Position numbers and translations under genes: made by a program. 32,395 nt of DNA from Octopus sinensis (lineage: Eukaryota): contig NW_021829591.1 in the NCBI RefSeq assembly GCF_006345805.1, positions 1 through 32,395 on the forward strand, in the 5' to 3' direction. The notes beneath the pieces were generated by a model, which was not told where the DNA came from, ran no database searches, and worked only from the letters and a program-made list of their open reading frames with translations. Position 1 is the first letter of the stretch, and each line of letters begins with the position of its first letter. This document shows positions 1 through 27,059 of this stretch, one piece after another.

Positions 1-668
1 AGAGGAATATCTTGAGGTGGAGACAAACTATTTGAATGATCACAAAACGTGTATTACAACATACTTTGGAAATTTATGCAATTTTTGATTTTTAACATTT
101 TTTAACTGTTTTTCGTTATTTTATATACCATGGTGATTTTTTTGTTTAACCAAATTTAAGTGCTTTTTGCCGATTTACTAACAAACTTTTTAAAAAAAAT
201 TAATTTTTTAAGCCTGTTTTCCTGTTTGATAATACGCATGTTTTCCTAAAATGAAAAGGCTGACTTCTTGTTGAATAAAACAGCTAAAAAAACTCTCAAA
301 TATCGCTTTTCTACAAAACTAGAATGAATGTTATTTTTTTCCCGCTACTATTATGCAATTATATTTGATCAAAGAAAATAAAATAAGAAAAAAACTATTT
401 TTAAGATTTGAAAGAATTAATATAAATCCCAGTCGGTTCTACCGATTACATACAGTATATAGAAAAAAAGTTTCCCGTAAAGAAATACCAAATTTTAGAT
501 ATTGGGTTTTTAATGACGTATCTTGAAATGGATATTTTAAAATGGTCTTAAAATCTTCCAAAAATTTTTTTATCATTTATTTGTAACGTTGACATATATA
601 ACTAGGAAGATATTTCAATTTAAATCCAAAAATATTTAAATAGGTAATCTTAATAATAAAAATGTATG

Positions 669-712
669 GTGTGTGTCTGTCTGTCTGTCTGTGTGTCTGT
701 CTGTCTGTCTGT
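669..712 (+). repeat. (GTCT/GTGT)n microsatellite near Helitron A 5' end
   Basis: gtgtgtctgtctgtctgtctgtgtgtctgtctg... directly visible; also at the 5' end of copies B and C. Confidence 0.95.
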
Positions 713-849
713 GCACACCCACATTCAAATTGTTACAAACCAGATCAATTGTCAAAACCTTCCCTTTGTAGTTATTCGATAATGAGGCACAATAAAAGGT
801 TGATATCCTCTAAGAAACATCCTGTCAAAAATTTTAATAAGAAAGAATA

Positions 850-2766
850 TCTCGATGATGAGGTCCCCAAAACCTTCAAGTCAATTTTCTGCGTTTTGTT
901 AAAATGAACAACAAGAAAGTCCTCGACTCACATGATGTGGTCCCCCAAAACCTTCAAGCCAAAAAATTAAAAAAAATTATTTTCTGCGTTTTTGTTAAAA
1001 TGAACAACAAGAAAGTCCTCGACTCACATGATGTGGTCCCCCAAAACCTTCAAGCCAAAAAATTAAAAAAAAATTATTTTCTGCGTTTTTGTTAAAATGA
1101 ACAACAAGAAAGTCCTCGACTCACATGATGTGGTCCCCCAAAACCTTCAAGCTAAAAAATTAAAAAAAATTATTTTCTGCGTTTTTGTTAAAATGACCAA
1201 CAAGAAAGTCCTCGACTCACATGATGTGGTCCCCCAAAACCTTCAAGCCAAAAAATTAAAAAAAAATTATTTTCTGCGTTTTTGTTAAATGAACAACAAG
1301 AAAGTCCTCGACTCACATGATGTGGCCCCAAACCTTCAAGCTAAAAAATTAAAAAAATATTTTCTGCGTTTTTGTTAAAATGACCAACAAGAAAGTCCTC
1401 GACTCACATGATGTGGTCCCCCAAAACCTTCAAGCCAAAAAATTAAAAAAAAATATTTTCTGCGTTTTTGTTAAAATGAACAACAAGAAAGTCCTCGACT
1501 CACATGATGTGGTCCCCCAAAACCTTCAAGCTAAAAAATTAAAAAAAATTATTTTCTGCGTTTTTGTTAAAATGACCAACAAGAAAGTCCTCGACTCACA
1601 TGATGTGGTCCCCCAAAACCTTCAAGCCAAAAAATTAAAAAAATTATTTTCTGCGTTTTTGTTAAATGAACAACAAGAAAGTCCTCGACTCACATGATGT
1701 GGTCCCCCAAAACCTTCAAGCTAAAAAATTAAAAAAATTATTTTCTGCGTTTTTGTTAAAATGACCAACAAGAAAGTCCTCGACTCACATGATGTGGTCC
1801 CCCAAAACCTTCAAGCCAAAAAATTAAAAAAAAATTATTTCTGCTTTTTGTTAAAATGAACAACAAGAAAGTCCTCGACTCACATGATGTGGTCCCCCAA
1901 AACCTTCAAGCTAAAAAATTAAAAAAATTATTTTCTGCGTTTTTGTTAAAATGAACAGCAAGAAAGTCCTCGACTCACATGATGTGGTCCCCCAAAACCT
2001 TCAAGGTAAAAAATTAAAAAAATTATTTTCTGCGTTTTTGTTAAAATGAACAACAAGAAAGTCCTCGACTCACATGATGTGGTCCCCCAAAACCTTCAAG
2101 GTAAAAAATTAAAAAAATTATTTTCTGCGTTTTTGTTAAAATGAACAACAAGAAAGTCCTCGACTCACATGATGTGGTCCTCCAAAACTTTCAAGCCAAA
2201 AAATTAAAAAAATTATTTTCTGCGTTTTTGTTAAAATAAACAACAAGAAAGTCCTCGACTCACATGATGTGGTCCCCCAAAACCTTCAAGCCAAAAAATT
2301 AAAAAAATTATTTTCTGCGTTTTTGTTAAAATGAACAACAAGAAAGTCCTCGACTCACATGATGTGGTCTCTCAAACCTTCAAGCCAAAAAATTAAAAAA
2401 AATTATTTTCTGCGTTTTTGTTAAAATGAACAACAAGAAAGTCCTCGACTCACATGATGTGGTCCCTCAAAACCTTCAAGCCAAAAAATTAAAAAAAAAT
2501 TATTTTCTGCGTTTTTGTTAAAATGAACACAAGAAAGTCCTCGACTCACATGATGTGGTCCCCCAAAACCTTCAAGCCAAAAAATTAAAAAAATTATTTT
2601 CTGCGTTTTTGTTAAATGAACAACAAGAAAGTCCTCGACTCACATGATGTGGTCCCCAAAACCTTCAAGCCAAAAAATTAAAAAAAAATATTTTCTGCGT
2701 TTTGTTAAAATGAACGACAAGAAAGTCCTCGACTCACATGATGAGGTCCTCCACAACCTCAAGCCT
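850..2766 (+). repeat. Tandem array, 95-97 bp monomer, about 20 units (Helitron A internal array)
   Basis: Unit atgaacaacaagaaagtcctcgactcacatgatgtggtcccccaaaaccttcaagccaaaaaattaaaaaaaattattttctgcgtttttgttaaa starts at 904, 1000, 1097, 1193 ... 2616, 2710 (last truncated). A degenerate leading unit precedes it. No unique spacers. Confidence 0.97.
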
Positions 2767-3484
2767 CGTGAGGCCATTAATTAGCTTAGCTATCTTTTTT
2801 CGATGACATAAATTCTTTTTTGTTAAATTTTCGTTAAAAAAATAAAATAAAAGCTCTAATTGTTATCGACCATGAATATACTGTGCAATTATCAGATTTT
2901 AAAAACCACTAAAAAGGAAAAAGCAAAAATTATTAGAGATTTACATAATTGATTCTTTTTAACTGCCGAAACTGACAAATTCGATTATGCTACTGTTTAG
3001 ATTTCTTAAAAGATAGAGGCAAATAAAATTTAAATTAGTCATGTAAATTTCAATTTGCCTATATTTAAATCTCCTTGATTTAACAGGCTTTAATTTTTTC
3101 CTTATAATACTACAAAGATGAAGCTGATTATCATTTTCTTTACCGAAACAGACAAGTTCGATTATGCTAAAGTTTCAATTCCTTTAAACATAGAGGCAAT
3201 TAAGTATAATGGCTTTGATTGGATAATACACTTTACATAAATTTCACTAAATAAATTTACGTAGAAAATTTAATAAAATTACTGATTCGCGTTTACAAAA
3301 TCATAAGAATGTCCTATAAAGAGAGATCTGAGAATGTTAACAAACAAGAGAATATGAACCATATAACAAAAAAAGAGAAACGAGGAAGATGTGCTTAAAT
3401 GGTGAGGGAACTTAGACAACAGCTGGACAAGGTCAGGACTGCTGTTAGACTCAACTACGGGTAATAGAATTATGCATTCTAGGT

Positions 3485-4284
3485 TAATTGTTTGGGATGA
3501 ATGTACGATGGCTCATAAAGGCGCATTCAAGCAGTTGACCGAACATATAGAGATATCAAGAATTGTAGCGACCATTTGTTTGGGGGAGCATTAGTTGTAT
3601 TGGCAGGTGATTTTAGACAGACGCTGCCAATTATTCAAAGAGGGACGCCTGCGGATGAATTGAATGCCTGCCTCAAATCGTCATATTTGTGGACACACGT
3701 GAAAAAGGTAAGCTTAGATGTAAATGTACATGCACATTTACAAGGCGTTAATAGCATATTCCCACAAATCCTTCTAGATATTGGAAATGGGGCAATCACT
3801 TCAGAAATGCACGACCAGAAAATTAGGCTACCGGAAGAATTATGTATTTTCGTAGAAACAGCAGAAGAATTATTGAATGCCGTCTATTCCGAACTATCTG
3901 AACACTACGTGAATTTCGACTGGCTGCGTGAACGAGCTATATTAGCTCCACTTAATGATGAGGTACTTAATATAAATTTAGATTTATTAATGAAAATCCC
4001 TGGCAGAGAAAGAATATATAAATCGGTCGACGTTATTATGGACCATGAAAGGGCCTGCGATAGATTTAAGAGACTACAATTTCCGCTGAAGATAAGTTTT
4101 GCTATGACAATAAACAAGGCCCAGGGACAGTCTTTAAAGGTAGTAGGCTTATTTTTAGAGAACGAGTGCTTTTCACATGGCCAGCTGTATGTGGGGTGCT
4201 CAAGGGTAGGTAGAAGAGAAATTATTTATATTTGCCAAGGATGGACGGACTGCAAACATCGTTTATCCACAGGCCTTAGAATAA
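3485..4284 (+). pseudogene. Helitron PIF1-family helicase remnant (Rep domain absent, internal deletion, frameshifts)
   Basis: LFWDECTMAHK, FGGALVVLAGDFRQTLP, ERAILAP, FKRLQFP, FAMTINKAQGQSL, FSHGQLYVGCSRV. The segment normally between YKSVD and FKRLQFP is missing. Confidence 0.9.
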
Positions 4285-4734
4285 GGTTATATCAAAGCAG
4301 GTCGCATTTATATATCTACATAAATTATAGTTATTTAAGGAAACTGCGAGCGTAGCGAGCAGGGCCTCCGCAGGAGCTAGCTCGCAGTGAGCGAAGCGAA
4401 CTGCTGAGCTAGTTAAAAATAAGATATTGGAAAATATTAAAAAATCACAAAAATATCAGAACAACATTCATTTCATTTTGTAACTTTTTAAAAGTATATT
4501 TGTTTTTTCAAGAGTTTCCATAATTAAATAGTTCTTAAAAATCTTTTACTTGTTTATTTTGGAATCTGAATTTCATTAACTTGTCTTTCTAAAAAGTATT
4601 TACATTGCAAACAGGTTGTTTTATTAAAAATAATATTTTTACATTTTAAAATCTTTTATTTTTGATAATTTATAATTCAATTTTTCAACCGGAGGATATC
4701 ATTGTTGTGCTGTGTTTGAAATTTATCAAAAAGA

Positions 4735-6883
4735 ATGAGTCCTGATGATTTGGTCGAATCAATTGAAAAACTCTACGAGGCGGAACTACTAGATGATGCT
4801 TATAGACTGGTAAATTGTTGAATTTTTAACTTTAGAGTGGTTTATGGCTTTCAATGTTTAATAACGACAAATCAGATATTTTAAGGGCCCGCGTCCATAA
4901 AATCCTTGCAGATTGCCTTTGTGCCAATAATGAGTTTAAATCAGCGATTGTTTACTTTTTAAATGACTTTTTTAGGAGAATTATAATAGAGTGTTGTACA
5001 TTCGAAAATTACTTAAATTAACAAATAAGCAAGCACTACAAGTTATTTTAATCGATTTATAATAATAAGATCAAAATAGACGATACTGAGATTTGTTTCA
5101 AGCTTTACAAATGCCACGTTGGGATGAAAAACTATGAGGATGCTCGGAAAATAGTATTCAAATATAATTACCTATTTAAAATGAACTTAAAATTTACTGC
5201 TAATAGTTAGAGACAGTTCCTTCTAAGTACCGCAATGTGAAAATAACCAATGCATTGGCCAGACTATATGAAAACCATGGACAAGATAGAACAGCCCAGA
5301 CGTATTACAAAGAGGTTATAAGGTTTAAAAATTATAAAAATAAATTCACAGGGAGTTTCCACTTGCATTAGACGCAATAGTCAAATTGTCGTCTTTGGGT
5401 GGGAAAACAGGCGATATGGCGGGAATTTTTCTTGAGAATTTTCCAACTCAGTCACGAATTGATTGGTAGTTCCTTTTTAATTATTTCAGGGTATCACTTT
5501 ATCTAAAAGCAGAAAATTTGAAGTATACGGGGTACTATATAAGTGCTGCTGAAATATTGAGAACTTTATCAATGGATGTATTAGATTTTTAAATTATTAT
5601 TTATTCAAAAGAGTCATAATACATATTTTATAAAAATAATTAGTTAACATGTTTATCCTATAGTCCTCATTGAAATTTAATATGGACATTATATTGTTAT
5701 TGGCCGAATGTGAATACTTTTCTGGGAATTACGATAATGCGATGAATGCATACTCATTGGCTCTTTCCAAGAATTATCATCAAGTAAGGAGAATGGAGAT
5801 TTACTCCTCTCTTTTATACTTTTCTTTAAACAAACAAGAACTTTCAAAGTTTGCCATTTGTATTTACGTATTTAGATTTATATCTAGACTTAACGAATCA
5901 TCCCCAAATAGTAAGGAATTGGCCATTGCCCATGGATTTTATGCTCTTTTCATAAAGAAACTGTCCCGGGCTTTTATATTTGCTAACAAAGTCTGAATGT
6001 ACTTTTAAATACGTAGGAAAGGCTCTGGAAGAAGATCAGTGGAATAGTGAAGCACGATTGTTGAAAGGAATTTCGTTCTACAATTCTAGAAGACGCAAGT
6101 TAGCTACAGCCGAGTTTTCGCGGCTATATCAGATTTTTCCGTGCCGTTATGAGATTGTGAAGGGTTAGATTGTTAATAATAACATTTATTTAGGGGTCCT
6201 GGACTGTCATAATGCAAACGGGGATAATAAAAGTGCTTTAATGCTGGCTCAAAACGTCAAAAAGAACATAATCTCCAATCCAAAGTTTGCTATTGTACGA
6301 AAAATTATGTTTCATAATATTTGTAGCTCTACGCTAATACAATCACAAACAACAACAGAGATCTCCCTTCAATTGAAAAGGTAATTAGTTTTTTATTCTC
6401 ACTATTTGTTCTGTCTATAAAATCGGAATAAATGTTATATAAATCGTTATCCAGGCATGCTCATTCCTCGAGGGCGTTCTGAAGAATCATTCGGATTGTT
6501 TTGAAGTGCTTTACTGTTTGGTGGATTTGTTTGTGAAGTGTGGCCATTTCAGGCGTGCAAGTGAAGTTTTAAAGGACACGCTGAGAGTTTATAGCAATAC
6601 AAAATTGCATTGTAAATATGGATGTGTACTGCTAAAAATGAAAAATTCTAGAGATGCGATGGAACATTTTAACAAGGCATTGCTGTACCATTTAAATGAT
6701 AAATGATGGCTCAGTTTAGACCCGTCTAACGTGGAGGCTAGGAAAGCTGTCCTCTCTGTTGATGTTGGTTGTTTTTCTGACGTTTCTACTCAGTTTGATA
6801 TGGATATGGAACTACAAGATTTGGTTTTTGTATTTTTTAATTCGTAGGCGCATGATAGTGACATTGAAAACGAGTTTCCTTAA
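4735..6883 (+). CDS. ANAPC7: Anaphase-promoting complex subunit 7 (TPR protein), about 542 aa, 14 introns of 24-86 nt
   Basis: The manual spliced model closes in frame (2149 nt minus 520 nt introns = 1629 nt). LETVPSKYRNVKITNALARLYENHGQDRTAQTYYKEVIREFPLALDAIVKL matches the APC7 signature (human LDGIPSRQRTPKINMMLANLYKKAGQERPSVTSYKEVLRQCPLALDAILGL, from memory). All introns GT-AG. Confidence 0.9.
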
Positions 6884-6959
6884 CTTTGATTTTTTTGTTT
6901 TTTGTTATAGAAATTTTGTCTTAGATTAATTAATATAATAAATTTGTTTTCTAATTTTT

Positions 6960-7855
6960 ATGAGTAGTGATGGCTGCGATCATAGCACAGTTTTTGGTAC
7001 TTTGTGCGCCCTCTGTGGATGTGATGTTTGCAGGTTAACTTCAATAAGCAAAAACGAATTTTAGTGATCAAGATGATCACAGATTGCCAATATTACCACA
7101 AAATATTACTTTGAAAGTAACACCTGAGGTACAAATTTTTTATAACTTTAAATTTTCTTAGGTTTCGCACGAGTTTAGGAAATCTGACAGAGACCGTTTG
7201 ATTAAATCTAAAAAACTTATTTTGATTCTTGATTTGGATCATACATTAGTGCATTCAAGTACGAACCGATTTACACACCAATCGGTGCCTATTCTGGATG
7301 TTTGACTCAGTAATAACAATTCTAGGATATTCACGAGCTTAAAAACAAATATGGGGCAACAATATTTGTTAAAATAAGACCAAAAGTCGATGAGTTTTTA
7401 AAATCAGTTTCTTTGTTATATGAGCTGTACGTTTGTTCTTTGGGGGACCGCTCGTACGTTAAAAAAATATGTAATATTATCGATCCTTCCGGGGAATTAT
7501 TCCATGGACGAATTTTATCTAGAGATGAATTTTTGATGGAAACCAAAAAATCAATTTTCGAGTAATTTACATAATTCTCAATGATAGCAAGTTATTTTCC
7601 TGCGGGGTGGAGATGATATGTGTTGTTGATGATAGGGAGGATGTTTGGGAGTTTTCTTCCAATGTTATTAGAGTCAAGCCGTTTGTTTTTTTCAAGGAAG
7701 AAAATAGTCCTCCTTTTGATGAATCGGCTTGCGAAGAATCTTATTTAATCTCTCTTTCAAATTTTTTGAAAACTATTCATTTAAGATTTTTCGAAGATCC
7801 TGTTACCGGAGATATGCGTGCGATCATCCCGAGTGAATTTAATAGAGGCAAATAA
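6960..7855 (+). CDS. CTDP1: FCP1/CTDP1-like RNA polymerase II CTD phosphatase, 259 aa, 4 introns, no BRCT domain
   Basis: Exons 6960-7033, 7065-7128, 7162-7299, 7326-7561, 7588-7855 total 780 nt. N-terminal CDHSTVFGTLCALCGCD, catalytic LILDLDHTLVHS, KIRP, RILSRD and LFSCGVEMICVVDDREDVW are FCP1-type motifs. Confidence 0.85.
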
Positions 7856-8067
7856 TTATGTATATCACAATATTTTCTATTGATTAGATTTTTTAATACA
7901 TGCTGTTTCTTTATTTTGTTTTTAAATAATTATTTTATACTTTTTCGTAAATACTTTTAAAACACAAGACCTTATCTTACTGTTTACGACTAAAAATTGT
8001 TTGTTTTGTAATGTTTTTTCATGTATTAATAATTAAAAGTATTGCAAATTGCACAGGTATTAATAAT

Positions 8068-9608
8068 TGTTACAGTAAATAGAGATACCAGGAAATAGCG
8101 ATCCGAAGTAAAATAATTATAAAATTTTATATTGTCCAAATAGAGAAATCTATAAAGACAAATACTGTGCAGGACGATTTTTTCGTTAATTTGATAATTT
8201 TATAAATTAATAAATAGCTTACTACAAAATCTGCTTTAAAATCGTACAGGAATAATGAAAATATTTGCTTAAGAATAGATTCGTTTATTGTTTGAATTGT
8301 TAATTTTTTTAAATGTTTAAATGACGCTTTTTGTTAACAATTTAGTCAATTTCGCGTTTAAATCTTTATGGAGTGTATTTTAGTTTCGATTTCATTTTAT
8401 TTAAACAAAAATGAAAATATGGAAAAGTAATTCAAATTCTTTTTTTTTTGAAATAGCAAATAGTTGTCTATTTTCGATTGCAATCATAAAAGAACAAAAA
8501 TTTAAGATATAAAGAAGTTTATTCCGAAACAAAATTTTTATAGTTTTCCAACGATAGCTAGTCTATTAATATCGATCTCGTAAGGGGCCTCATGATTGAT
8601 CAACATATTCGTCGAACTAATTTGGACCCTGTCGTGCTGTAAATCCAACGACAGTATATTCAGTACAATCCAAATGTTCGTGGAATGGTCGACGGCGTGT
8701 TGTTGTATTCGTATCTGTGTCGGTGTGGATGACCACTTTCGTCCCCCAGAGAAAGTCAAGGATATCATTCCTCCAATTAGATCGTCTCCTCATGGATTCA
8801 GCAGCACTATTAGTATTCCTCCTCGCAATATCTCGTAAATCTTCGGCTGCTGCAGAAGCTACTACAAGTCGATCCATCTCGTTGTCGTTTGTTTCCACAT
8901 CAAGTCCATGTAGTTCTTGTTGAATTTGCTCGGTTCTTGGCTCTTCATTGTAGTCAAGTTGATTGATGGAATCAATATATTCAATGAGTGCCTGAGTATG
9001 ACCTCGAGCCATTTGTTCTCTAATCCGTGGGCCATACATCAAATGAACAGAGAGAAAAGCGCGTTGTAGAGTGTATCCTTGTATTATATGCGTATGTTAT
9101 ATTTCGAGGATATCAATCCAACGAAATCCATTCCCGTTGGTTAATAACGTCGAACTGAGCATCCATTTGAGTGTCTGATTAAGTCGTTCCACTTGACCCT
9201 GTATCCAGGGACATCGGGCCCTCCCCTGACATGGCGAATTCCAAATTCTTCGCACAACTGCGTCATCCGCGAGTTGCAGAATTCAAGTCCATTGTCGGTA
9301 TGTATTATGAATACTTCCCCCAAAGAAAGAACAACACTTCGTATCCTCGGTATCACATCAGCCGAGTTCTTTGATTTCAGTGCTGAAGTCCAACAGTATT
9401 TCGTAAACGAGTCCATTATCACCAGCAACCATTTTTCGCCACTATTTTGATCGCTGTAATATCTTAGGTCCACAAGATCGATAATCAGCCTTTCTCGTGA
9501 AAACTTGGCAATTATTGGAGTAATTTGTCTCCTGGTTGCGAGCGTACGACGAGCTATGCAAGTTGTACTACGGATCGCTATTTCCTGGAATCCCTATTTA
9601 CTGCGACA
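8068..9608 (-). mobile_element. Ginger-like (gypsy-integrase-type) DNA transposon, internally deleted
   Basis: About 43-bp TIRs (TGTTACAGTAAATAGAGATACCAGGAAATAGCGATCCGAAGTA vs TGTCGCAGTAAATAGGGATTCCAGGAAATAGCGATCCGTAGTA), TGT...ACA ends, 5-bp TSD ATAAT (8063-8067 / 9609-9613), rve-type integrase inside. Confidence 0.85.
8538..9570 (-). pseudogene. rve-type DDE integrase/transposase remnant (KRBA2/SCAND3-like), frameshifted
   Basis: ERLIIDLVDLRYY...IMDSFTKY...IHTDNGLEF...(frameshift)PWIQGQVERLNQTLK...YAYNTRIHSTT...MYG. The N-terminus is lost: coding sequence starts at the TIR within the zinc-binding region. Confidence 0.85.
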
Positions 9609-9746
9609 ATAATTTTATGTGTTTGAGCAAATACCTTTATAATTAGAAAATTTGAGTCAATAAAATCTTAATTTCATTAAATATTTTTTTTAATAGAGGA
9701 TTTTAATTGTCAAAATTAGTTAATAACTTTATAAATTAAATATTCT

Positions 9747-10224
9747 TTACTCAAGTATTTTCAGCATGCCTTTCCTTCCGAATTTCTGAATCATAGTTAA
9801 CGGAGTTTCAGAATATCGATTTTTAGTGTTCAGATCTGCTCCAATGGTTTTTAGATATAAAAGAGAGCTATCATTTCCATATTCAATCGCGTAGTGCACA
9901 GGTGTTTGCAGTTCGTTATTCCGAATATTAATGTCAGCATTATGCTGTAAAAGTATTCGAATAATGTCCAAATTCCCTTCGATATTAATTGTTTTTATAC
10001 CTAGTATTGCTGCCCAATGGAGTGGAGCTAAGCCACCACATTCAGTATCTTTAAAATTTGGATTATAGCTTTCGTTTTTCAAAAGATATTCTACTCTTGT
10101 CTTATTTTGAGAAAAAACTGCATGGTGCAGTTCAAATTGATAATTATTATCTATTTTTAAAAAAGAATTTTCTAAATTAAAATGATTCAATCCATGAACC
10201 TTTTCCTAGGTTATTTTTTTTCAT
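9747..10224 (-). CDS. Small ankyrin-repeat protein (about 140 aa), 2 introns (10172-10199, 9977-10000)
   Basis: ATG at 10224 splices in frame via a 28-nt GT-AG intron. Removing the 24-nt intron restores a canonical repeat PLHWAAILGNLDIIRILLQHNADIN; further repeat TPVHYAIEYG. Confidence 0.8.
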
Positions 10225-13215: not shown

Positions 13216-13472
13216 AGGTAGCGCTGACTTTAACATTATTTTACCCCCTCTGGTTATAAAAACTATTTCATGGTTTAACAAGATTTTTCATAAACCAAGA
13301 CAAACAAACTTGAACAAATTGTATAAAGACGATAATATAAAAAACTAGCTCAGCAGTTCGCTTCGCTCACTGCGAGCTAGCTCCTGCGGAGGCCTGCTCG
13401 CTACGCTCGCAGTTTCCTTAAATAACTATAAATTTATGTAGATATATAAATGCGACCTGCTTTGATATAACC

Positions 13473-14275
13473 TTATTCTAAGGCCTGTGGATAACGATGT
13501 GTTTGCAGTCCGTCCATCCTTGGCAAATATAAATAAATTTCTCTCTTCTACCTACCCTTGAGCACCCCACATACAGCTGGCCATTTGAAAAGCACTCGTT
13601 CTCTAAAAATAAGCCTACTACCTTTAAGACTGTCCCTGGGCCTTGTTTATTGTCATAGCAAAACTTATCTTCAGCGGAAATTGTAGTCTCTTAAATCTAT
13701 CGCAGGCCCTTTCATGGTCCATAATAACGTCGACCGATTTATATATTCTTTCTCTGGCAGGGATTTTCATTAATAAATCTAAATTTATATTAAGTACCTC
13801 ATCATTAAGTGGAGCTAATATAGCTCGTTCACGCAGCCAGTCGAAATTCACGTAGTGTTCAGATAGTTCGGAATAGACGGCATTCAATAATTCTTCTGCT
13901 GTTTCTACGAAAATACATAATTCTTCCGGTAGCCTAATTTTCTGGTCGTGCATTTCTGAAGTGATTGCCCCATTTCCAATATCTAGAAGGATTTGTGGGA
14001 ATATGCTATTAACGCCTTGTAAATGTGCATTTACATTTACATCTAAGCTAACCTTTTTCACGTGTGTCCACAAATATGACGATTTGAGGCAGGCATTCAA
14101 TTCACCCGCTGGTGTCCCTCTTTGAATAATTGGCAGCGTCTGTCTAAAATCACCTGCCAATACAACTAATGCTCCCCCAAACAAATGGTCGCTACAATTC
14201 TTGATATCTCTATATGTTCGGTCAACTGCTTGAATGCGCCTTTATGAGCCATCGTACATTCATCCCAAACATTAA
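13473..14275 (-). pseudogene. Helitron PIF1-family helicase remnant (copy B)
   Basis: ORF 13624-14184 nearly identical to copy A and carries the same internal deletion. Confidence 0.9.
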
Positions 14276-14993
14276 CCTAGAATGCATAATTCTATTACCC
14301 GTAGTTGAGTCTAACAGCAGTCCTGACCTTGTTCAGCTGTTGTCTAAGTTCCCTCACCATTTAAGCACATCTTCCCTCGTTTTTCTTTTTTTGTTATATG
14401 GTTCATATTCTCTTGTTTTTAACATTCTCAGATCTCTCTTTATAGGACATGCTTATGATTTTGTAAACGCGAATCAGTAATTTATATTAAATTTTCTACG
14501 TAAATTTATTTAGTGAAATTTATGTAAAGTGTATTATCCAATCAAAGCCATTATACTTAATTGCCTCTATGTTTAAAGGAATTGAAACTTTAGCATAATC
14601 GAACTTGTCTGTTTCGGTAAGAAAATGATAATCAGCTTCATCTTTGTAGTATTATAAGGAAAAAAATTAAAGCCTGTTAAATCAAGGAGATTTAAATATA
14701 GGCAAATTGAAATTTACATGACTAATTTAAATTTTTTTTGCCTCTATCTTTTAAGAAATCTAAACAGTAGCATAATCGAATTTGTCAGTTTCGGCAGTTA
14801 AAAAGAATCAATTATGTAAATCTCTAATAATTTTTGCTTTTTCCTTTTTAGTGGTTTTCAAAATCTGATAATTGCACAGTATATTCATGGTCGATAACAA
14901 TTAGAGCTTTTATTTTATTTTTTTAACGAAAATTTAACAAAAAAATTTATGTCATCGAAAAAAGATAGCTAAGCTAATTAATGGCCTCACGAG

Positions 14994-16545
14994 GCTTGAA
15001 GGTTGTGGAGGACCTCATCATGTGAGTCGAGGACTTTCTTGTCGTTCATTTTAACAAAAACGCAGAAAATAATTTTTTTTAATTTTTTGGCTTGAAGGTT
15101 TTGGGGGACCACATCATGTGAGTCGAGGACTTTCTTGTTGTTCATTTTAACAAAAACGCAGAAAATAATTTTTTTTAATTTTTTGGCTTGAAGGTTTTGA
15201 GGGACCACATCATGTGAGTCGAGGACTTTCTTGTTGTTCATTTTAACAAAAACGCAGAAAATAATTTTTTTTAATTTTTTGGCTTGAAGGTTTTGAGGGA
15301 CCACATCATGTGAGTCGAGGACTTTCTTGTTGTTCATTTTAACAAAAACGCAGAAAATAATTTTTTTTAATTTTTTGGCTTGAAGGTTTTGGGGGACCAC
15401 ATCATGTGAGTCGAGGACTTTCTTGTTGTTTATTTTAACAAAAACGCAGAAAATAATTTTTTTAATTTTTTGGCTTGAAAGTTTTGGGGGACCACATCAT
15501 GTGAGTCGAGGACTTTCTTGTTGTTCATTTTAACAAAAACGCAGAAAATAATTTTTTTAATTTTTTACCTTGAAGGTTTTGGGGGACCACATCATGTGAG
15601 TCGATGACTTTCTTGTTGTTCATTTTAACAAAAACGCAGAAAATAATTTTTTTAATTTTTTACCTTGAAGGTTTTGGGGGACCACACATCATGTGAGTCG
15701 AGGACTTTCTTGTTGTTCATTTTAACAAAAACGCAGAAAATAATTTTTTTAATTTTTTAGCTTGAAGGTTTTGGGGGACCACATCATGTAGTCGCGAGGA
15801 CTTTCTTGTTGTTCATTTTAACAAAAACGCAGAGAAAATAATTTTTTTTAATTTTTTGGCTTGAAGGTTTTGGGGACCCCACATCATGTGAGTCGAGGAC
15901 TTTCTTGTTGTTCATTTTAACAAAAACGCAGAAAATAATTTTTTTAATTTTTTAGCTTGAAGGTTTTGGGGGACCACATCATGTGAGTCGAGGACTTTCT
16001 TGTTGTTCATTTTAACAAAAACGCAGAAAATAATTTTTTTTTTATTTTTTGGCTTGAAGGTTTTGGGGGACCACATCATGTGAGTCGAGGACTTTCTTGT
16101 TGTTCATTTTAACAAAAACGCAGAAAATAATTTTTTTTAATTTTTTGGCTTGAAGGTTTTGGGGGACCACATCATGTGAGTCGAGGACTTTCTTGTTGTT
16201 CATTTTAACAAAAACGCAGAAAATAATTTTTTTTAATTTTTTGGCTTGAAGGTTTTGGGGGACCACATCATGTGAGTCGAGGACTTTCTTGTTGTTCATT
16301 TTAACAAAAACGCAGAAAGGAAATTTTTTTAATTTTTTGGCTTGAAGGTTTTGGGGGACCACATCATGTGAGTCGAGGACTTTCTTGTTGTTCATTTTAA
16401 CAAAAACGCAGAAAATAATTTTTTTTAATTTTTTGGCTTGAAGGTTTTGGGGGACCACATCATGTGAGTCGAGGACTTTCTTGTTGTTCATTTTAACAAA
16501 AACGCAGAAAATTGACTTGAAGGTTTTGGGGGACCTCATCATCGA
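14994..16545 (-). repeat. Tandem array, 95-97 bp monomer, about 16 units (Helitron B internal array)
   Basis: Reverse complement of the array A monomer; 16 unit starts counted between 15045 and 16485. Confidence 0.97.
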
Positions 16546-16685
16546 GGATATTCTTTCTTATTAAAATTTTTTGACAGGAAGGTTCTTAGAGGATATCAAC
16601 CTTTTATTGTGCCTCATTATCGAAAACTACAAAAGGGAAGGTTTTGACAATTTGATCTGGTTTGTAACAATTTGAATGTGGGTGT

Positions 16686-16730
16686 GCACAGACAGACAGA
16701 CAGACAGACACACAGACAACAGACACACAC
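16686..16730 (-). repeat. (GTCT)n microsatellite near Helitron B 5' end
   Basis: cagacagacagacagacacacagacaacagacacacac visible on the plus strand. Confidence 0.95.
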
Positions 16731-16758
16731 CATACCATTTTATTATTAGATTAAAGTA

Positions 16759-18134: not shown

Positions 18135-18489
18135 TTTTCAAATTTCTAAATTCAACCAGAATTAACAAATAAATTAATAATTTGAAAATATTTTATTAAA
18201 TTATATAAAATTATAGGTTTATTATTAAAAATATTTATTAATTTTATTAATCTACTGATTTTTAGATTTTTTAAAACTGTTAGAGTATTTTGTCAATGAG
18301 ATAGTTATTAAATTAAAAGATTTTTTTATTGTTTCCGGCTTTTCAAACATTGGATCTTTGCTTAACGATAAGAATTTAAGATAACTAACGTTTTATTTCA
18401 GACAATGTTTAGTTTATATTTTCTCAATTTACCTAAAAATATGAATTGTACGCAACTGCATCTGCAAAGTAATATGATCAAAAGGACGT

Positions 18490-19175
18490 GACTGATCTCA
18501 TCAATTTTTTTTCAAAAATAGCACACAAGGAGCACAGGAAATCGGATATATTATCTTTAAACAGCAGACTTAAAAAACAGTTGGCACCTCTCCTTTTCTC
18601 GGTAAAAGAGGCATGGGATACTTTGCATTCCACAAAAAAAATACTCTCTTGGTCCAGACAAAATCCCTATTAAAAAATCTTGGTGACGAAGGAGCTACTT
18701 TTTTAACAGCTATCTCGATCAACCAAAATGTGAGACCGTTATTATGTAAACAGGCACTAATGAGGCCGATACTAAAATCTGGAAGACCTAGAGACGACCT
18801 TGCATTTTTCAGACCGGTTTCCCTGATATACCACATGTCAAAAATCCTAGAGAGGATGCTTCTCGGAACAATAAAAGAAATTTTACCGAAAACCCCTTGT
18901 CAACATGGGTTCAAAAATAAGATGTCCATGTCTACACATTTACAAACATGGACGGAGTTCATTTGTATTGGATTTGCAAACAAGCGAGATACTTAGAGAC
19001 TGTGCTCTGTTTCGTCGAGTTAGATTATATCGAGGAAAGCTCAAACTTTGATCAACAAGATCCTATGTGGACGAATGGGAAAGATGTGCCTCGGAGACTT
19101 AAAGTCTAAGTCTAGACTCCTACGCAACGGAGTATCTCAGGGATACCCCCATCCCCGGCTCTTTGATCAAATTTT
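18490..19175 (+). mobile_element. Degenerate non-LTR retrotransposon reverse-transcriptase fragment
   Basis: PILKSGRP...FRPVSLIYHMSKILER...CQHGFK and NGVSQG (GVPQG-like) motifs; stops and frameshifts. Confidence 0.75.
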
Positions 19176-19179
19176 TTTA

Positions 19180-19330
19180 GGTGATGGAAAAGCCGGTCTA
19201 CCTCACGAGGATCGTAAATGCGCATGGAGATTTTGACCCCGAGTTTGCGGAGGAAGTTTTCCGTTTTCGGACCACGAGCACCCGACATCTCCGCCGCAAT
19301 TGCCAGCCTGAAAAACTCATCCAAAAGACC
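19180..19330 (-). mobile_element. CRE-clade retrotransposon 3' (RLE) fragment
   Basis: AEMSGARGPKTENFLRKLGVKISMRIYDPRE matches the CRE motif ETxGxxGxxAxxFLxxLGxxIxxxxGDPRE. Confidence 0.6.
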
Positions 19331-21099
19331 GGAGTATTCTGTCAGTTTTGTATCTTAATAAAATGAAATTAAAAAAGTTAATCTTAGCTCAAGGTTAATG
19401 TATCAGATGCCCAGAGTATCGCCGGCCCATGTGACAATAATAAAAAACGTTCCGAACCGGCTCCTCTGAAGAATCTGATTAAGCGAATGCCAGATTACCA
19501 GCCAATGTTGTGGTTTCAAAAACAACTCCCATCCTTAGCTTCACTCTGCTTTATTCAGTTATTCAGTTGCTGATTCCCTATTGGCAATTGATAATGTTCT
19601 TAAAGATTCGCTTCCGCTTATAATAAACATCAGATTGATGGATGACAGCTTTTGATTTTAATGCTATTTATGTTATTTCTCTTAATCAGAATATTTCATA
19701 CTCTCTTACTTCACTTTCTCATAATTTACGACTTACCCAAAATTTACAAATATGTGTAAGATCAACTCAATCAACACCGCATTTGAATCTGTATATTATT
19801 ATATCTCTTTACAAAGACCCGTAGTCATTTTAGCTCCGTACAGGCAAAACACACACTTTATTTTTTAAGTAAAAAACAGTTAATGTTTAACTAATCGTAG
19901 AACCAAAGAATGTTCTTGAGTTATTTTTCTTGTGTAACGCTCCAGTTCCGCACTGATAACGGCGTTACTTGTCAAGCCTTTTAACGTCGTATAGATGCAC
20001 GGAGGCTTCCACTAGATGAACAGGAGCGAGAGTCAAACCCGTGACCTAAGTCACTTTTGGCCCGTACTTATCTTCATAACTCTACCTTATCCCAAATTGA
20101 CTAATATGTGGACGATTAACCAAATTAAGACACACAGTTGAATCTTTAAGAAATGTTTTTTTTCACTCGAGAAACCACTTGAAATTTTCAATACTTTAAT
20201 TAACCTTTTACTTTGAAAATAAAACGTGCGACCTGCCTTTGCGGAGCTATAGAATACTATGCTCTGGGGAAAAGGCTATATTAATTATTATTGATTTAAT
20301 TACAAATAAAACAACATTTTTATCAGCAATTATTCTCTAAAGTAAGAAAAATTTGCAATCCTTTCGATTTTTTGGTAATAGTGATTATTATGAATCCGAT
20401 TTAAAATGCAATCACGATTATGGTAAGTTCTGAAATATAATTATGCATTTTTACTTATAATAGATAAGACCAACGAAAAATCCACATGTTAATATATATA
20501 GTCTATTAGCTCGATCCAAAGAGGAGCCACGAAAACATGGCAACAAATCAACATCACGACCTTTCTTTACCATAAATATCAATTCAATAACAATTCTATA
20601 TATCAATAAATACTAAATTAAAAAATTTTCTTTTTTGAAAGAGTTATATGTTCTTTGAACTTACAAACTTTTGTTATCTTGAAGACTTTACTTTTGGCGG
20701 ACTTTTAGAGGTCGTTTACTTCTATTGGGCTCGCCCTGAAAGGTTCGAAATCTGAACTAATCTGCCTGTCCGGGAATTCATCTGAATTCGAATCTTTTTT
20801 TTCTACTTCATGTTAAGCACTTAAGCATCACCGCTTTTCACGATTTTGTTATCCTCAGTTTGGCAATCAGTGCACTAGAAAGGCTCCTGTGACAAGAAAC
20901 ATAAAGTAGAAATCTTTATTTCATGTATTCGCAAACTCAAATCTTATCTGGGGCTTTTCCTACTGAAAACTTTTTTTTATCCCGAAACTTACTTTCCTTA
21001 TGCACTCATCGCTCTACTTTCTCGAGCAAAAGCAAATATCTCATCTTGATATTCTTCTTCCCTTTTCTGAACAGTGAAAGTTGTCGGAATATACTGCAG

Positions 21100-21897
21100 G
21101 TGCGACAAATGGGTTTCTCATGGACTTAAAATCCCGGAAATCCTCTCAGTTCAAAGGAATTGAGATAATACTTTTTTCTCACACATACTTGAAACTATTC
21201 GCTTATTCGCCGACCAATCGCAGTTGGCATATATTAAATGCGCTTGTCAACCACATTTGGTTGATTGGCTCAATGCGTTACCGATCTCGTCAGCCGGTAT
21301 ATTCCTGAACAACGAATCGATCGGTATCGTCATCTGTATACGCCTTGGCATTGAGATTTGCCAGCCACATTGCTGCAGGTTTGGCAAACTCATCGACAGG
21401 AGAAGATTACACCTTCTTTCTTGTAGCCTCAGTGCTGGCAGGTTCCCCAGGCACGCTTCACTTAAAGCACGCGCTTAGCGCCGCTGGATTCCCTTCAGTA
21501 TTAGAACCATTTGGGCGAGAGCGTGGTGACGGAAAACGTCCTGACGGGTCAATATTATTACCGTTCAAGATGGGATTTGCCCTCGTATGGGATGTAACTT
21601 GTGTTGACTCGTTTTTTTATCATCACTCATAGACTCGCTTCTCGCCCTGGAACGGCCTCCACTTTTGCAGAAATTAAGAAAATCGCAAAGTATGCATCCT
21701 TGGTCGACACTTGTTGCTTCGTCCCAGTAGGGGTAATTGTGGGGGTAATTGTCCCAAAAGCTCTCAGGAGTCACGACAGTCACGAAACGAGCTGGCTTTT
21801 TCAAAGGATATCGCTCGAGATGGAAATTGCCTGTTCATTCGCTCAGCGACTAATCTAAGTTAAACTTTCCTTTTTTCACATTTCTTTGCAAAAAAAG
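21100..21897 (+). mobile_element. CRE-clade non-LTR retrotransposon 3' portion (CCHC knuckle + restriction-like endonuclease)
   Basis: WLNALPISSAG...[12 protein letters not shown]...HLLSC...FPRHA, LEP...DGKRPDG...[24 protein letters not shown]; ends in a short A tail. Confidence 0.85.
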
Positions 21898-22712
21898 TTA
21901 AATCTAAGATAATTTAATTTTCGAGTTGTGATAAACACGATTATTCAACAATTATTTATACAATATTTAATATTAGCTGTTATGACACTTTAATTAAAGC
22001 ACATAATAACTTTATCTGAAAGGGTAATAAAGACTGAGGAACTCGCCGTAAATCCCCTTCTAAAGGAGTAATTTTCAATAATAAGGAGAGAAAATCTCAA
22101 TTAAATACAGTAAAGTCCATCGAATCCGCCGACTCTCGAATCCGCCATACCATCGAATCCGTCAATTATAATTAATAAATTCTCTTATCCGCCATTTTTC
22201 CTAGAAAAATTCTCGAATCCGCCATATTTTTTATAATGAATCCGCCATGTGTCCTAATTTAAATAATTTTTTTAATTAAATTTACTGATATAAATCAATT
22301 TATTAACACGTTACATCTGTCTTTGTTGTTGTATTAATGAAACGTAACTGTACAAGACTAAAAAACAATCAAAAAATTGAGATTTTGAAGTTTATTCAAA
22401 CAAATAATGAACTATCTTCACTAAAAATTCTGAGATTTTTTCAAAAAAATACAACTTGCCTGTTTCTCGCCGATCTATTGATGATCTGAAAAGTAAAAGA
22501 GGATCTAACATTATGTTTCATAACCTAAGATCTGACATTTCCCGCAAACAATATTTAAAGTTTGCTGAAATCGATGATAATACTATTGCTTGGGTCAATT
22601 CAATGGATCTTAAGGAGCCATTTTAAATGATAGGATTATTACTGAGAAAGCAAAAGCCTTTGCATTGAATCTCGGGATTACTGAATTCAAAGGAAGCAAA
22701 GGGTGGTTAGAA

Positions 22713-22997
22713 GATGAAGATTGGAAAGTACAAGGAGCTCTCTGAACGGTATCTGTTCACTCCCATCGCCGTCGAGACTTCCGGCGTCATCGGCGAAAAG
22801 TCTCTTTCCTTTCTAAAAAAGCTTGGCCGCATGATCTCCATAAACGGGGAGACCCACGCGAGTCCAAGTGGCTTTTCGAAAGGATTTCCTTGGCCATAGT
22901 ACGTGGAAACTGTGTTTCCATTTACGATGCCGGGAATTTAGTTAGTTAATAACTATTGTTAATTACATTTAACTTTTTGACAAAAAAAAAAAAAAAA
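22713..22997 (+). mobile_element. 5'-truncated CRE-clade retrotransposon with poly(A) tail
   Basis: KYKELSERYLFTPIAVETSGVIGEKSLSFLKKLG...GDPRESKWLFERISLAIVRGN, then a 16-A tail (22982-22997). Confidence 0.88.
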
Positions 22998-23359
22998 TGC
23001 ATGGAGAATCTGCAACGCCAAATTTTGACCCTAATTTAGTATCAGATTCATTGAATTAATCAAAAATAAAATCAGTCTTTACGGAGCTCAAAATGTTTAT
23101 AATGCCGATGAAACTGGCTTATTTTACAAAATGATACCGTCTAAGAGTGTTTGTAAAACCATTAAATCTGGCTATAAAGTCCTGAAAGACAGAGTTTTGT
23201 TATGTTATGTACAAATGTTGACGGTACAGATAAGCGAACACCCTTACTAATTGGGTTGTTTAAAAATCCAAGATGTTTCAAGAATTTCGATATCAAAAAA
23301 TCTTAATAATAAAATGGTATGGTGTGTGTCTGTCTGTGTGTGCACACCAACTTCAAATT

Positions 23360-24735
23360 GGCAATACGATGTCCTCGACTTACATGATGAGGTCCTTAAA
23401 ACCTTCCCCCCAAAAAAATTAAAAAAAAATTTTCTGCATTTTGGTAAAATGAACAACTACAATGTCCTCGACTTACATGATGAAGTCCTTAAAACCTTCC
23501 CCCCAAACAAATTAAAAAAAAATTTTCTGCATTTGGTTAAAATGAACAACTACAATGTCCTCGACTTACATGATGAAGTCCTTAAAACCTTCCCCCCAAA
23601 AAAAATTAAAAAAAAATTTTCTGCATTTTGGTTAAAATGAACAACTACAATGTCCTCGACTTACATGATGAAGTCCTTAAAACCTTCCCCCCAAAAAAAT
23701 TAAAAAAAAATTTTCTGCATTTTGGTTAAAATGAACAACTACAATGTCCTCGACTTACATGATGAAGTCCTTAAAACCTTCCCCCCCAAAAAAAATTAAA
23801 AAAAAATTTTCTGGATTTTGGTTAAAATGAACAACTACAATGTCCTCACCTTACATGATGAAGTCCTTAAAACCTTCCCCCCAAAAAAATTAAAAAAAAA
23901 TTTTCTGCATTTTGGTTAAAATGAACAACTACAATGTCCTCGACTTACATGATGAAGTCCTTAAAACCTTCCCCCCAAAAAAATTAAAAAAAAATTTTCT
24001 GCATTTTGGTTAAAATGAACACACTACAATTCCTCAACTTACATGATGAAGTCCTTAAAACCTTCCCCCCAAAAAAATTAAAAAAAAATTTTCTGCATTT
24101 TGGTTAAAATGAACAACTACAATGTCCTCCAACTTACATGATGAGTCCTTAAAACCTTCCCCCCAAAAAAAATTAAAAAAAAATTTTCTGCATTTTGGTT
24201 AAAATGAACAACTAAATGTCCTCGACTTACATGATGAAGTCCTTAAAACCTTCCCCCCCAAAAAATTAAAAAAAAATTTTCTGCATTTTGGTTAAAATGA
24301 ACAACTACAATGTCCTCGACTTACATGATGAAGTCCTTAAAACCTTCCCCCCAAAAAAAATTAAAAAAAAATTTTCTGCATTTTGGTTAAAATGAACAAC
24401 TACAATGTCCTCAACTTACATGATGAAGTCCTTAAAACCTTCCCCCCCAAAAAAATTAAAAAAAAATTTTCTGCATTTTGGTTAAAATGAACAACTACAA
24501 TGTCCTCGACTTACATGATGAAGTCCTTAAAATCTTCCCCCCCAAAAAAATTAAAAAAAAATTTTCTGCATTTTGGTTAAAATGAACAACTACAATGTCC
24601 TCGACTTACATGATGAAGTCCTTAAAACCTTCCCCCAAAAAATCAAAAAATTATTTTCTGCATTTTGATTAAAATGAACAACGTGAATGTCCTCGACTTC
24701 ATGATGAGGTCCATTAAAACCTTCAAGGCAAAAAT
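23360..24735 (+). repeat. Tandem array, 93-96 bp monomer (consensus 94), about 14-15 units
   Basis: Unit atgaacaactacaatgtcctcgacttacatgatgaagtccttaaaaccttccccccaaaaaaattaaaaaaaaattttctgcattttggttaaa; starts at 23449, 23542, 23637 ... 24582, 24674; alignable with the array A monomer. Confidence 0.97.
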
Positions 24736-24829
24736 CTCACGTATTAAGAATATCCTTGATGAAAACGACAGCGAGAATATTAACAATGATGAACTCCCAA
24801 TTATTCGCGATAAAGAAATCAATTCATCC

Positions 24830-24981
24830 CGCATGATCTCCCATAAACGGGGAGACCCACGCGAGTCCAAGTGGCTTTTCGAAAGGATTTCTTGGCCATA
24901 GTACGTGGAAACTGTGTTTCCATTTACGATGCCGGGAATTTAGTTAGTTAATAACTATTTGTTCTTACTTAAAAATGATAT
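24830..24981 (+). mobile_element. Short CRE 3' fragment inside Helitron C
   Basis: Near-identical to 22826-22958; flanked by a candidate 8-bp TSD ATTCATCC (24822-24829 / 24982-24989). Confidence 0.8.
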
Positions 24982-25093
24982 ATTCATCCTATGTTTTTCT
25001 CTTTAAAATTAAATGCATATATCATTATCGACCATGAATCAAAATTAAAGCTATTATCATATTTGACTTTGACAGAATGTGCAATCACAGATT

Positions 25094-25298
25094 GCACGAC
25101 TTTGAATAGAGTGTGCAATTAACAGATTTTGAAAAACCACTTTGATAGTTGAAACCACATTAGCACAATCATTAACACAATTTACCACCAATTGACGCAC
25201 GACCTTGAATAGAGTGTGCAATTAACAGATTTTGAAAAACACTTTGATAGTTGAAACCACATTAGCACAACCATTAACACAATTTACCACCAATTGAC
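25094..25298 (+). repeat. Tandem duplication of about 102 bp inside Helitron C
   Basis: gcacgac...caattgac occurs twice (25094-25196, 25197-25298). It contains gtgcaatt.acagatttt.aaaaaccac, also seen once in copy A near 2882-2910. Confidence 0.9.
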
Positions 25299-25676
25299 AG
25301 CGCAATCAGAAGAATTTGCGTAAAAATATTAACTATTTACTTGAGTTTTTCGTAAAGATAGAATTTATTTTCGGTATGCCTCTTTTCTAAACTTTTTTAT
25401 TATTCAAAAATATTTTTTAAATAGATAACCGAAGGAGGAAAAACGAAGCTGAAGAAAAAACGGTCAGCTTAATAAGGTAATTAATTAAATCTTTTTTGTG
25501 TGTCGCTTTTTTGTGTGTCGCTTTCTTGCCTGCCGCATTTCCGCCTGCCGCATCTCCCCCTGCCCCATTTCCGCCAGTAAAAAACAAAAAATAAAAAAAG
25601 AAAAAAAAGAAATTACAAAGGAAAAATGAAAAAATTAAATATAAAAAAAATAAACCACAAAAAATGAAAAAAAAGT

Positions 25677-25864
25677 TTGCAATGACAATAAACAAGGCCC
25701 AGGGACAGTCATTAAAGGTAGTTGGGTTATTTTTAGAGAGTGAGTGCTTTTCACATGGACAGCTGTATGTGGGATGCTCGAGGGTAGGCAGAAGAGAAAA
25801 TTTATTCATATATGCCAAGGAAGGACGGACGACAAACATCGTTTATCAACAGGCGATAGAATAG
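25677..25864 (+). pseudogene. PIF1 helicase C-terminal fragment (Helitron C)
   Basis: FAMTINKAQGQSLKVVGLFLESECFSHGQLYVGCSRVGRRENLFIYAKEGRTTNIVYQQAIE*. Confidence 0.9.
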
Positions 25865-27059
25865 GGTTACATTAAACCAGGTAGTTTTATACATCTACAT
25901 AAACTTATAGTTGTTTGATGAAACAGGCCCTCCGCAGGAGCTAGGTCGCGCTGAGCGAAGCGAGCTGCCGAGCTAGTATGTTATATATTCAAATTCAAAG
26001 AGAGCATGGATGGATAGCAGAATTTTTAATCAATTTCTATTAAAATGGGAAATGGAATTGCGAAAACAAGATAGAAAAATTTTGCTTGTTGTAGATCAAT
26101 CTCCTGCACATAAGGTGAATTTCATGAAATTTACATTAGGTATTGATTGAATTAAAACAAATTGAGATGTTATTTCTACCACCTAATACAACATCATCTT
26201 TTTCAGCCCATGGATAAGGGCATAATTAAATCGTATAAATGTAAATTCAATTCTCTAAAATTTTCTAATATAATTCAAAAAATTGAAGCTGGGACAAACC
26301 CCTATGTTGCACACAAACAACTAAGCATAAAAGTTCAATATTCTTTACATATTATGCTTGGAACAAAATAGAAAGTTCCTTAATTTTAAATTGTTTCATT
26401 CATGCAAATGGACTCAAAACAATGAAAATATTAATTATGAAAATCCTTAATTGAAAATTATGATAATATTCTGGAAAAAATGGATATTATTGATCCGTTA
26501 GAAGAAAGCTTTATATTGAGATTGAATATAATGAAAGTGAAGAACTTGAATTAAATAATTCAGAAAAAATAGAACAAGAAATTAGCGAAGAACCGTGTGA
26601 ACAAAGTCAGAAAGTTGTTACCATTAACGAGGCTTTTATCGCTTTAAACAAATTAAAGAGTTCTATAATCAAGAAGAATTCTTTAATATAGAAAATCTTG
26701 AGTATATTGAAAACATTGGATTTGCAATGATCCAAACTCTAAGAAGAAACAAGTCGAAACTTACTGATTTTTTGTTTTTAATTATTATTTTGGCTTAATA
26801 ATTTAAATTATTAATGGATTAAAAAATCGATAAGTCTCTCGAATCCGCCAAATTCTCGAATCCGCCAGATTTTGCCGATCCCCAAAATTGGCGGATTCGA
26901 GAGACTTTACTGTAGTTCGTTAAATTATAATTATCATTAATAAATGTTTTTTAATAAAGTTACACTTTTTAATATCTAAAATTAATAGAAGTATCGAATT
27001 ATTATTTTGTATTTTATATTTATTTTGTCGAAATCTCAAAATTGTTCATGTCTCTAATG

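Follow-up and report, generated by a model that had tools for sequence, protein, structure and literature searches.

Helitron and Helentron elements commonly carry central satellite-like arrays between conserved ends, and these arrays are able to expand into satellites (PMC12628747, a review of 2025). The Helentron-derived HINEs, among them Drosophila DINE-1/DINE-TR1, Crassostrea Cg_HINE, and the bivalve pearl elements, are non-autonomous rolling-circle elements inserted without target duplication, and they combine a GTCY-type microsatellite, a variable spacer, central repeats in a fixed orientation that reach up to about half of the element, and a palindromic right flank; moreover, their related subfamilies carry diverged monomers (PMC7492417, PMC4067079). 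Largely the same traits, with an atypical palindrome, are found in three elements, here named A, B, and C, that lie within 32,395 nt of Octopus sinensis DNA (contig NW_021829591.1, GC content ~32%); this whole stretch is referred to as the window, and all copy counts refer to it. A, B, and C very probably constitute one family of non-autonomous canonical Helitrons, which are deletion derivatives of an autonomous Helitron and carry the tandem array as cargo. The family is probably young and may be uncatalogued.

HINEs are defined by subterminal inverted repeats (subTIRs) of 11-15 bp, TT targets, and terminal strings of T (PMC7492417, PMC4067079), and they rely on Helentrons, in which an endonuclease follows the helicase, whereas the octopus elements lack subTIRs, run from TC to CTAG, occupy an A|T target, and possess a helicase open reading frame (ORF) that ends just before the terminus. 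Thus, the architecture that an earlier note on this DNA had likened to DINE-1 and bivalve elements does match the HINE plan, although the elements themselves, without subTIRs or a TT target, are not HINEs. The note had also held that the principle was already known from those elements, which is borne out and extends to canonical-type systems, namely Heli2Xen of Xenopus, with a 166-bp minisatellite (PMC12001565), and the non-autonomous HLE1 elements of Meloidogyne, with centromeric arrays and TC-containing microsatellite-like repeats in the 5' part (PMC13404089). Much as in A, B, and C, both have canonical-type termini, a 3' hairpin, CTAG, and an association with short arrays of 40-170-bp units, but their sequences are unrelated to the octopus elements as far as could be checked; furthermore, in Meloidogyne the Helitron-derived segments lie between centromeric arrays, while in A, B, and C, which are known from the 32-kb window alone, a single array is enclosed by both termini. 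Helraiser (HeliBat), the reconstructed bat Helitron (PDB 7LCC), resembles them in its 5' TC, its 3' CTAG after a palindrome, and its A|T target, but it is autonomous and has an intact RepHel, whereas the helicase of A, B, and C survives only as a truncated fragment with an internal deletion and frameshifts, and the three elements carry an array. The principle is already published; the locus is of value as a well-resolved example and for a family that may be uncatalogued, and it reveals no new mechanism. Canonical ends, a GTCT microsatellite, and a central array together make, at most, a variation on something known.

Canonical ends and the helicase remnant

Element boundaries were established by reading the sequence and searching for shared ends, with alignments of the ends that included the flanks (Table 1). 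In all three elements, the 5' end reads TCT(T)AATAATAAAA(A)TGGTATGG and leads into a GT/GTCT run, and the 3' end reads ...GAGCGAAGCGA(A/G)CTGC(T/C)GAGCTAG. Similarity between the copies begins at the 5' TC, present in 3/3, and stops after the G of the 3' CTAG, the form of CTRR found in 3/3; directly outside these points, where similarity ceases, the host base is A before and T after the element in every copy. The first 41 nt of A and C are 92.7% identical. The (GTCT)n microsatellite lies ~22 nt from the 5' end in all three elements and is separated from the array by ~120 bp plus a degenerate first monomer in A and B, and by ~25 bp in C. At the other end, a 7-nt mini-palindrome, GCGAAGC, occurs 11 nt before CTAG in A, B, and C, and in A and B it is accompanied by a 9-bp stem (ACTGCGAGC...GCTCGCAGT) that ends 24 nt from the terminus. 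A canonical Helitron is defined by a 5' TC, a 3' CTRR, a palindrome of 16-20 nt ~11 nt from the end, and insertion between A and T without duplication (PMC4067079); three of these four features are found here and the palindrome is atypical. With TC, CTAG, and A|T flanks in each copy, the classification as a canonical TC...CTAG family proposed in the earlier note is supported, and the three elements that it described, with these ends, a GTCT microsatellite, and a PIF1 remnant, are confirmed by the alignment of the termini, Tandem Repeats Finder, and Pfam. No other copies or fragments of the family were found in the window.

The target of C offers an independent view of the insertion. C is located inside a pogo/Tigger-type transposase gene, and when the 310 nt upstream and the 444 nt downstream are joined, a continuous frame is restored (...FKNPRCFKNFDIKK|YVIYSNSKRAWMDSRIF...) that gives a single Pfam DDE_1 match over profile positions 9-90 of 177 (E = 2e-14); taken alone, the two flanks match positions 9-34 and 45-90. 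Removal of C thus shows an empty site within the window and a precise insertion without target duplication, with a 1-nt shift of both boundaries being compatible with the frame. This site also bears on the idea that A and B represent a segmental duplication of a satellite-bearing locus rather than products of transposition, which would accord with their lying only 9 kb apart and being >99% identical at aligned bases. Such an origin is hardly credible, since the flanks of A, B, and C are mutually unrelated and similarity stops exactly at TC and CTAG, B is inverted, B follows the stop codon of one gene by 8 nt while A lies upstream of a different gene, and the empty site of C is precise.

In favour of classification as HINEs like DINE-1, Cg_HINE, or pearl, instead of canonical Helitrons, the published plan comprises a left flank with a GTCY-type microsatellite at its end, a spacer of 10-500 bp, central repeats that can fill ~50% of the element, and a palindromic right flank (PMC7492417, PMC4067079), and GTCY microsatellites were tied only to DINE-like elements in the literature searched. 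This classification is nonetheless very unlikely, as two defining features of HINEs contradict it. Between the first 60 and the last 100 nt, the longest complement is 5-6 bp when exact and 7-8 bp if one mismatch is allowed, values matched or surpassed in 62-99% of shuffled sequences, so that there are no subterminal inverted repeats; likewise, the target is A|T and not TT in 3/3 copies, terminal T strings are absent, and the termini are TC and CTAG. In addition, the distance from the helicase stop codon to the CTAG end, 112 nt in C and 128 nt in A, leaves no room for an endonuclease domain and indicates that none followed the helicase in the parent element.

The helicase remnant itself is of Helitron type. 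In A, it matches Pfam PF05970 (PIF1) with E = 1.1e-15, and its top PDB match (E = 6e-25) is to residues 1138-1333 of 7LCC, the Helraiser Helitron transposase, whereas cellular PIF1 helicases in PDB reach only about 1e-8. Arthropods, spiders, mites, and an octopus are the sources of the closest helicase relatives, which are ~50% identical. Aligned to an intact relative (P0004), with the in-frame C-terminal residues of C appended to the A sequence, the remnant runs from motif II to residue 211 and resumes at 295 to continue to the C-terminus, which coincides with the stop codon of C. This genomic deletion of ~83 aa, corresponding to the 2B domain, is common to A and B, together with frameshifts. 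The longest open stretch in A (3576-4355) is an ORF of 259 aa that continues for 24 codons beyond the helicase stop in a different frame. There is no Rep domain and no intact transposase in the frameshifted remnant, and a truncated, deleted helicase without Rep identifies the elements as non-autonomous internal-deletion derivatives of an autonomous Helitron. A gap in the 2B segment also appears in an Octopus bimaculoides protein, LOC128251090 (P0040; CM046628.1, locus L037, 9177-10260), where the gene model splices this segment out. The idea that the deletion is shared with this protein was rejected, as the genomic locus still has the 2B segment and bears no related array; the gap is an artefact of the gene model, and the locus is a decayed Helitron helicase annotated as a gene.

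The tandem array within the elements

The arrays amount to 50%, 44.6%, and 50.8% of the length of A, B, and C, respectively, so that the 14-20 tandem units of 94-96 bp, making up about half of each element, that had been reported before are confirmed by Tandem Repeats Finder (45-51%). With at most three mismatches allowed, a 25-nt core of the monomer occurs at 47 sites in the window, where 0 would be expected, and 47/47 lie inside A, B, and C. The position and orientation of the array are alike in the three elements. Furthermore, its boundaries are identical in A and B, the 5' edge being the degenerate first unit and the last unit at the 3' side running into CTCGTGAGGCC.

Comparison of A and B reveals how the array has been inherited. 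In a global alignment, the two arrays differ by four gaps of 91-93 bp, each one monomer long, and by 11 mismatches in 1504 aligned bases (0.73%), which equals the divergence of the unique 3' DNA behind the array (12 mismatches in 1639 bases, 0.73%) and is far below the mean distance of ~4.7% between monomers of one array. When the order of the B monomers was shuffled 200 times, the observed alignment score was never reached (z = 4.7). Rare variants follow the same order in both elements, namely a GCT unit, two CAAGGT units, a unit with AACTTTC and AAAATAAAC, CCCTC units, and an AACGAC terminal unit. Since collinear arrays have diverged to the same 0.73% as unique DNA, the array already existed when A and B last had an ancestor in common and has been copied along with the rest of the element; it is cargo transposed with the element and not a later insertion, as the earlier note had proposed in describing the array as carried by the element. 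Since that ancestor, the A and B arrays have changed only by gain or loss of whole monomers. A GACC variant is found in A only, in the alternate monomers 3, 5, 7, and 9, which indicates a local amplification of two units in this element.

These observations leave little place for separate arrays, formed in or inserted into each copy once the Helitron was already at its site. Tandem arrays are able to lengthen where they lie, and that of B is four units shorter than that of A, but independent origins would have to account for identical boundaries, collinearity monomer by monomer at the divergence of unique DNA, a shared order of variants that 0/200 permutations score as highly, and a homologous array in the same place and orientation in C; they are extremely improbable. 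Aberrant rolling-circle tandemisation of a truncated Helitron, the model of Xiong et al. 2016 for centromeric Helitrons of plants as cited in PMC12628747, is similarly difficult to sustain. According to that account, replication of a Helitron can produce tandem copies in which many 5' ends accompany just one 3' end, but each octopus element has a single 5' end, and neither terminal sequence of the element resembles the 95-bp unit, whose only match in the 5' region is the degenerate first monomer. This origin of the array is exceedingly doubtful.

As for the function of the array, a ribozyme or retrozyme was considered on the basis of CATGATGA...GAAAGTC in the monomer and was rejected, given that Rfam at gathering thresholds gave no match in the whole window and that the monomer folds no better than shuffled sequences. 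The array of B contains, on the minus strand, open frames of 137 and 166 aa (14987-15400 and 16042-16542) with the repeated peptide KMNNKKVLDSHDVVPQNLQAKKLKKIIFCVFV. A coding repeat was likewise rejected, as the 96-bp period of B is a multiple of 3, whereas the periods of A (95 bp) and C (94 bp) break the frame; unit length varies within the A-runs of the monomer. As the array shows no sign of a coding or RNA-structural function, it is best regarded as cargo that hitch-hikes with the element. Searches with the monomer core and the 3' terminus returned only 36 single chance 17-mers in metagenome contigs and nothing in GTDB genomes and viral contigs, and no 17-mers of the monomer occur in full-text papers.

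Several points weigh against the interpretation of A, B, and C as canonical Helitrons with a transposed array. The family is represented by three copies in a single 32-kb window, and its mobility is inferred from structure. The 3' palindrome departs from the usual form, with a 28-nt loop in A and B and with the 5' arm of the stem deleted in C, and the z-scores for folding of the 3' ends are weak (-2.3, -1.6, and -1.0). No autonomous partner was found, the nearest helicases in the protein collection being only ~50% identical. In the alignment of the arrays, gaps could be put wherever they kept mismatches lowest. Finally, unique DNA of A and B differs by 22 small indel events as against 18 substitutions in 1872 aligned bases, with many of the indels within homopolymer runs; this excess suggests homopolymer or long-read assembly errors, so that the helicase frameshifts may be partly artefactual and the lengths of arrays and units possibly affected.

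Two subfamilies and a proposed mode of spread

C shares with A the first 41 nt, the microsatellite, the array, a 44-bp internal piece, and the last ~312 nt, which are 82% identical by gapped BLAST and differ by 12% in substitutions. The 44-bp piece of A is duplicated in C as part of a 102-bp x 2 repeat. Mean identity between monomers is 95.3% within A, within B, and between A and B, and 93.3% within C, while monomers of A/B and C are only 77% identical. Their consensus sequences differ at 19/96 positions, and 15 columns are near-fixed. The edges of the arrays have a distinct composition, as the first and last units of both monomer types have TGAGG where interior units have TGTGG (A/B) or TGAAG (C), and the last units of the C array have the A/B-like TTAT and CTTCAAGG. 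Such intermediate edge units are expected under concerted evolution, since exchange homogenises interior units and leaves the edges behind. The monomer sequences thus support two subfamilies whose monomers were homogenised separately, in agreement with the earlier description of one monomer common to A and B and a homologous but distinct, homogenised one in C (77% identity, 15 near-fixed differences).

A scheme for the origin of the family would start from an ancestral autonomous Helitron, which would have given rise to deletion derivatives that kept the 5' end, the 3' part of the helicase as a pseudogene, and the GC-rich 3' end with CTAG, with the (GTCT)n microsatellite and the array of ~95-bp units held between the two ends. 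By analogy with known Helitrons, a RepHel transposase acting in trans, supplied by an autonomous relative, would nick at the 5' TC, one strand would be peeled off up to the 3' palindrome/CTAG signal, and this strand would be inserted between a host A and a host T, with no target duplication. In this way, the entire sequence from one end to the other, with the whole array, would be copied to the new site. After transposition, array length has changed by whole monomers, which fits unequal exchange or replication slippage, and over the longer separation of A/B and C, the array of each lineage was homogenised for its own variant, with poorly exchanging edge monomers keeping shared ancestral states.

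The locus shows unusually cleanly, and with an internal control, that Helitron transposition copies a satellite-like array monomer by monomer, and transfer of the array with the element is the proposed first step in models in which transposons seed satellite DNA. The layout of microsatellite plus array is, moreover, not restricted to Helentron-derived elements. It is rather unlikely, though conceivable, that the canonical Helitron lineage evolved the module of 5' (GTCY)n and central repeats independently, or acquired it through recombination with a Helentron-derived HINE; the papers searched connect this module with Helentron-derived elements alone. If this were true, rolling-circle transposition as such would favour the module, which may then help trans-mobilisation or a single-stranded or circular intermediate and would be more than a peculiarity of a single lineage.

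Table 1. Positions of elements A, B, and C and of their component parts within the window
Feature	Position	Strand	Details
Element A, whole non-autonomous Helitron	648..4412	+	3765 bp; TC...CTAG, flanks A and T
A 5' terminal sequence	648..669	+	TCTTAATAATAAAAATGTATGG
A (GTCT)n/(GT)n microsatellite	670..713	+	Tandem Repeats Finder, (TGTC)n
A degenerate first monomer	836..884	+	5' array edge; internal deletion, ancestral TGAGG state
A tandem array	884..2765	+	95-bp unit x 19.8, 95% matches; Tandem Repeats Finder
A non-coding post-array segment	2766..3483	+	Two 73-bp direct repeats, 2954-3026/3131-3203, 79% identical
A helicase pseudogene	3484..4284	+	Motif II (LIVWDE) to natural stop; frameshifts; ~83 aa 2B-domain deletion
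A GC-rich 3' terminal region	4343..4412	+	9-bp stem 4343-4351/4380-4388; GCGAAGC 4391-4397; CTAG 4409-4412
Element B, whole non-autonomous Helitron	13345..16750	-	3406 bp; same subfamily as A
B 3' terminal region	13345..13413	-	9-bp stem 13405-13413/13369-13377; GCGAAGC 13360-13366; CTAG
B helicase pseudogene	13473..14275	-	Same 2B-domain deletion as A
B tandem array	14993..16512	-	96-bp unit x 15.8, collinear with A array; Tandem Repeats Finder
B (GTCT)n microsatellite	16688..16729	-	Tandem Repeats Finder, (ACAG)n
Element C, second subfamily	23301..25976	+	2676 bp; within pogo/Tigger-like DDE_1 ORF
C short GT/GTCT microsatellite	23321..23342	+	Shorter than in A/B
C tandem array	23365..24724	+	94-bp unit x 14.4; Tandem Repeats Finder
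C nested 5'-truncated LINE 3' fragment	24830..24981	+	8-bp duplication ATTCATCC at 24822-24829/24982-24989
C 102-bp x 2 internal repeat	25094..25298	+	Core homologous to 44-bp piece of A (2867-2910)
C last 63 codons of helicase ORF	25674..25864	+	In frame to natural stop
C 3' terminal 50 nt	25927..25976	+	44/50 identical to A; GCGAAGC 25955-25961; CTAG at end

Insertion sites and neighbouring sequence

In two cases, the elements have landed next to genes. B starts 8 nt downstream of the stop codon (16759-16761) of an ORF with an RRM domain (region 16751-16962, minus strand), the homologues of which are named HIV Tat-specific factor 1 (HTATSF1). As B is on the same strand as this HTATSF1-like ORF, it would lie in or replace the 3' untranslated region of the gene. 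A lies upstream of a gene and ends ~315 bp before an ATG at 4727, where a run of TPR-like exons begins (positions 4413-7900, plus strand), with weak TPR/TT21 Pfam matches at 6443-6703; these exons are followed by an NIF/FCP1-type phosphatase domain at ~7190-7560 (PF03031, E = 3e-22).

Around C, a decayed pogo/Tigger-like DNA transposon (~22300-26400) hosts both the Helitron and a poly(A)-tailed fragment of a long interspersed nuclear element (LINE). The 152-bp LINE fragment within C is 95.7% identical to this other copy, at 22827-22966, which runs to a 16-nt poly(A) at ~22975-22990, and it resembles a retroelement insertion nested in C or in the master copy of C.

The regions between the Helitrons contain other repeats and genes at 9141-9473 and 9747-10190 on the minus strand and at 11493-12965 and 18570-21900 on the plus strand. 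Among them are a fragment of a retroviral-type integrase (rve, E = 2e-13), an ORF with ankyrin repeats (Ank, E = 5e-17), and two clusters of ORFs that are LINE-like by eye and have no Pfam match; ten further flanking ORFs also gave no matches in Pfam. Beyond C, three consecutive ORFs at 29287-30693, again with no Pfam match, are bracketed by 18-21-bp tandem repeats (TTAGGTCATATT...) at 29168-29245 and 30749-30867. Another ORF (27424-27765) has a hAT dimerisation domain (E = 5e-10), and the minus strand carries an EF-hand ORF (28203-28493). The homologue matches of both a hAT-like ORF and the HTATSF1-like exon are all at ≤56% identity, and exact look-ups with three ORFs of the window retrieved no record. 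Finally, the 11-nt motif TCGAATCCGCC occurs 7 times in the window against 0.25 expected, one occurrence being inverted, with clusters at 22120-22223 and 26839-26900 on either side of the pogo-like ORF, and its copies may be subterminal repeats of the pogo-like transposon or of another one.

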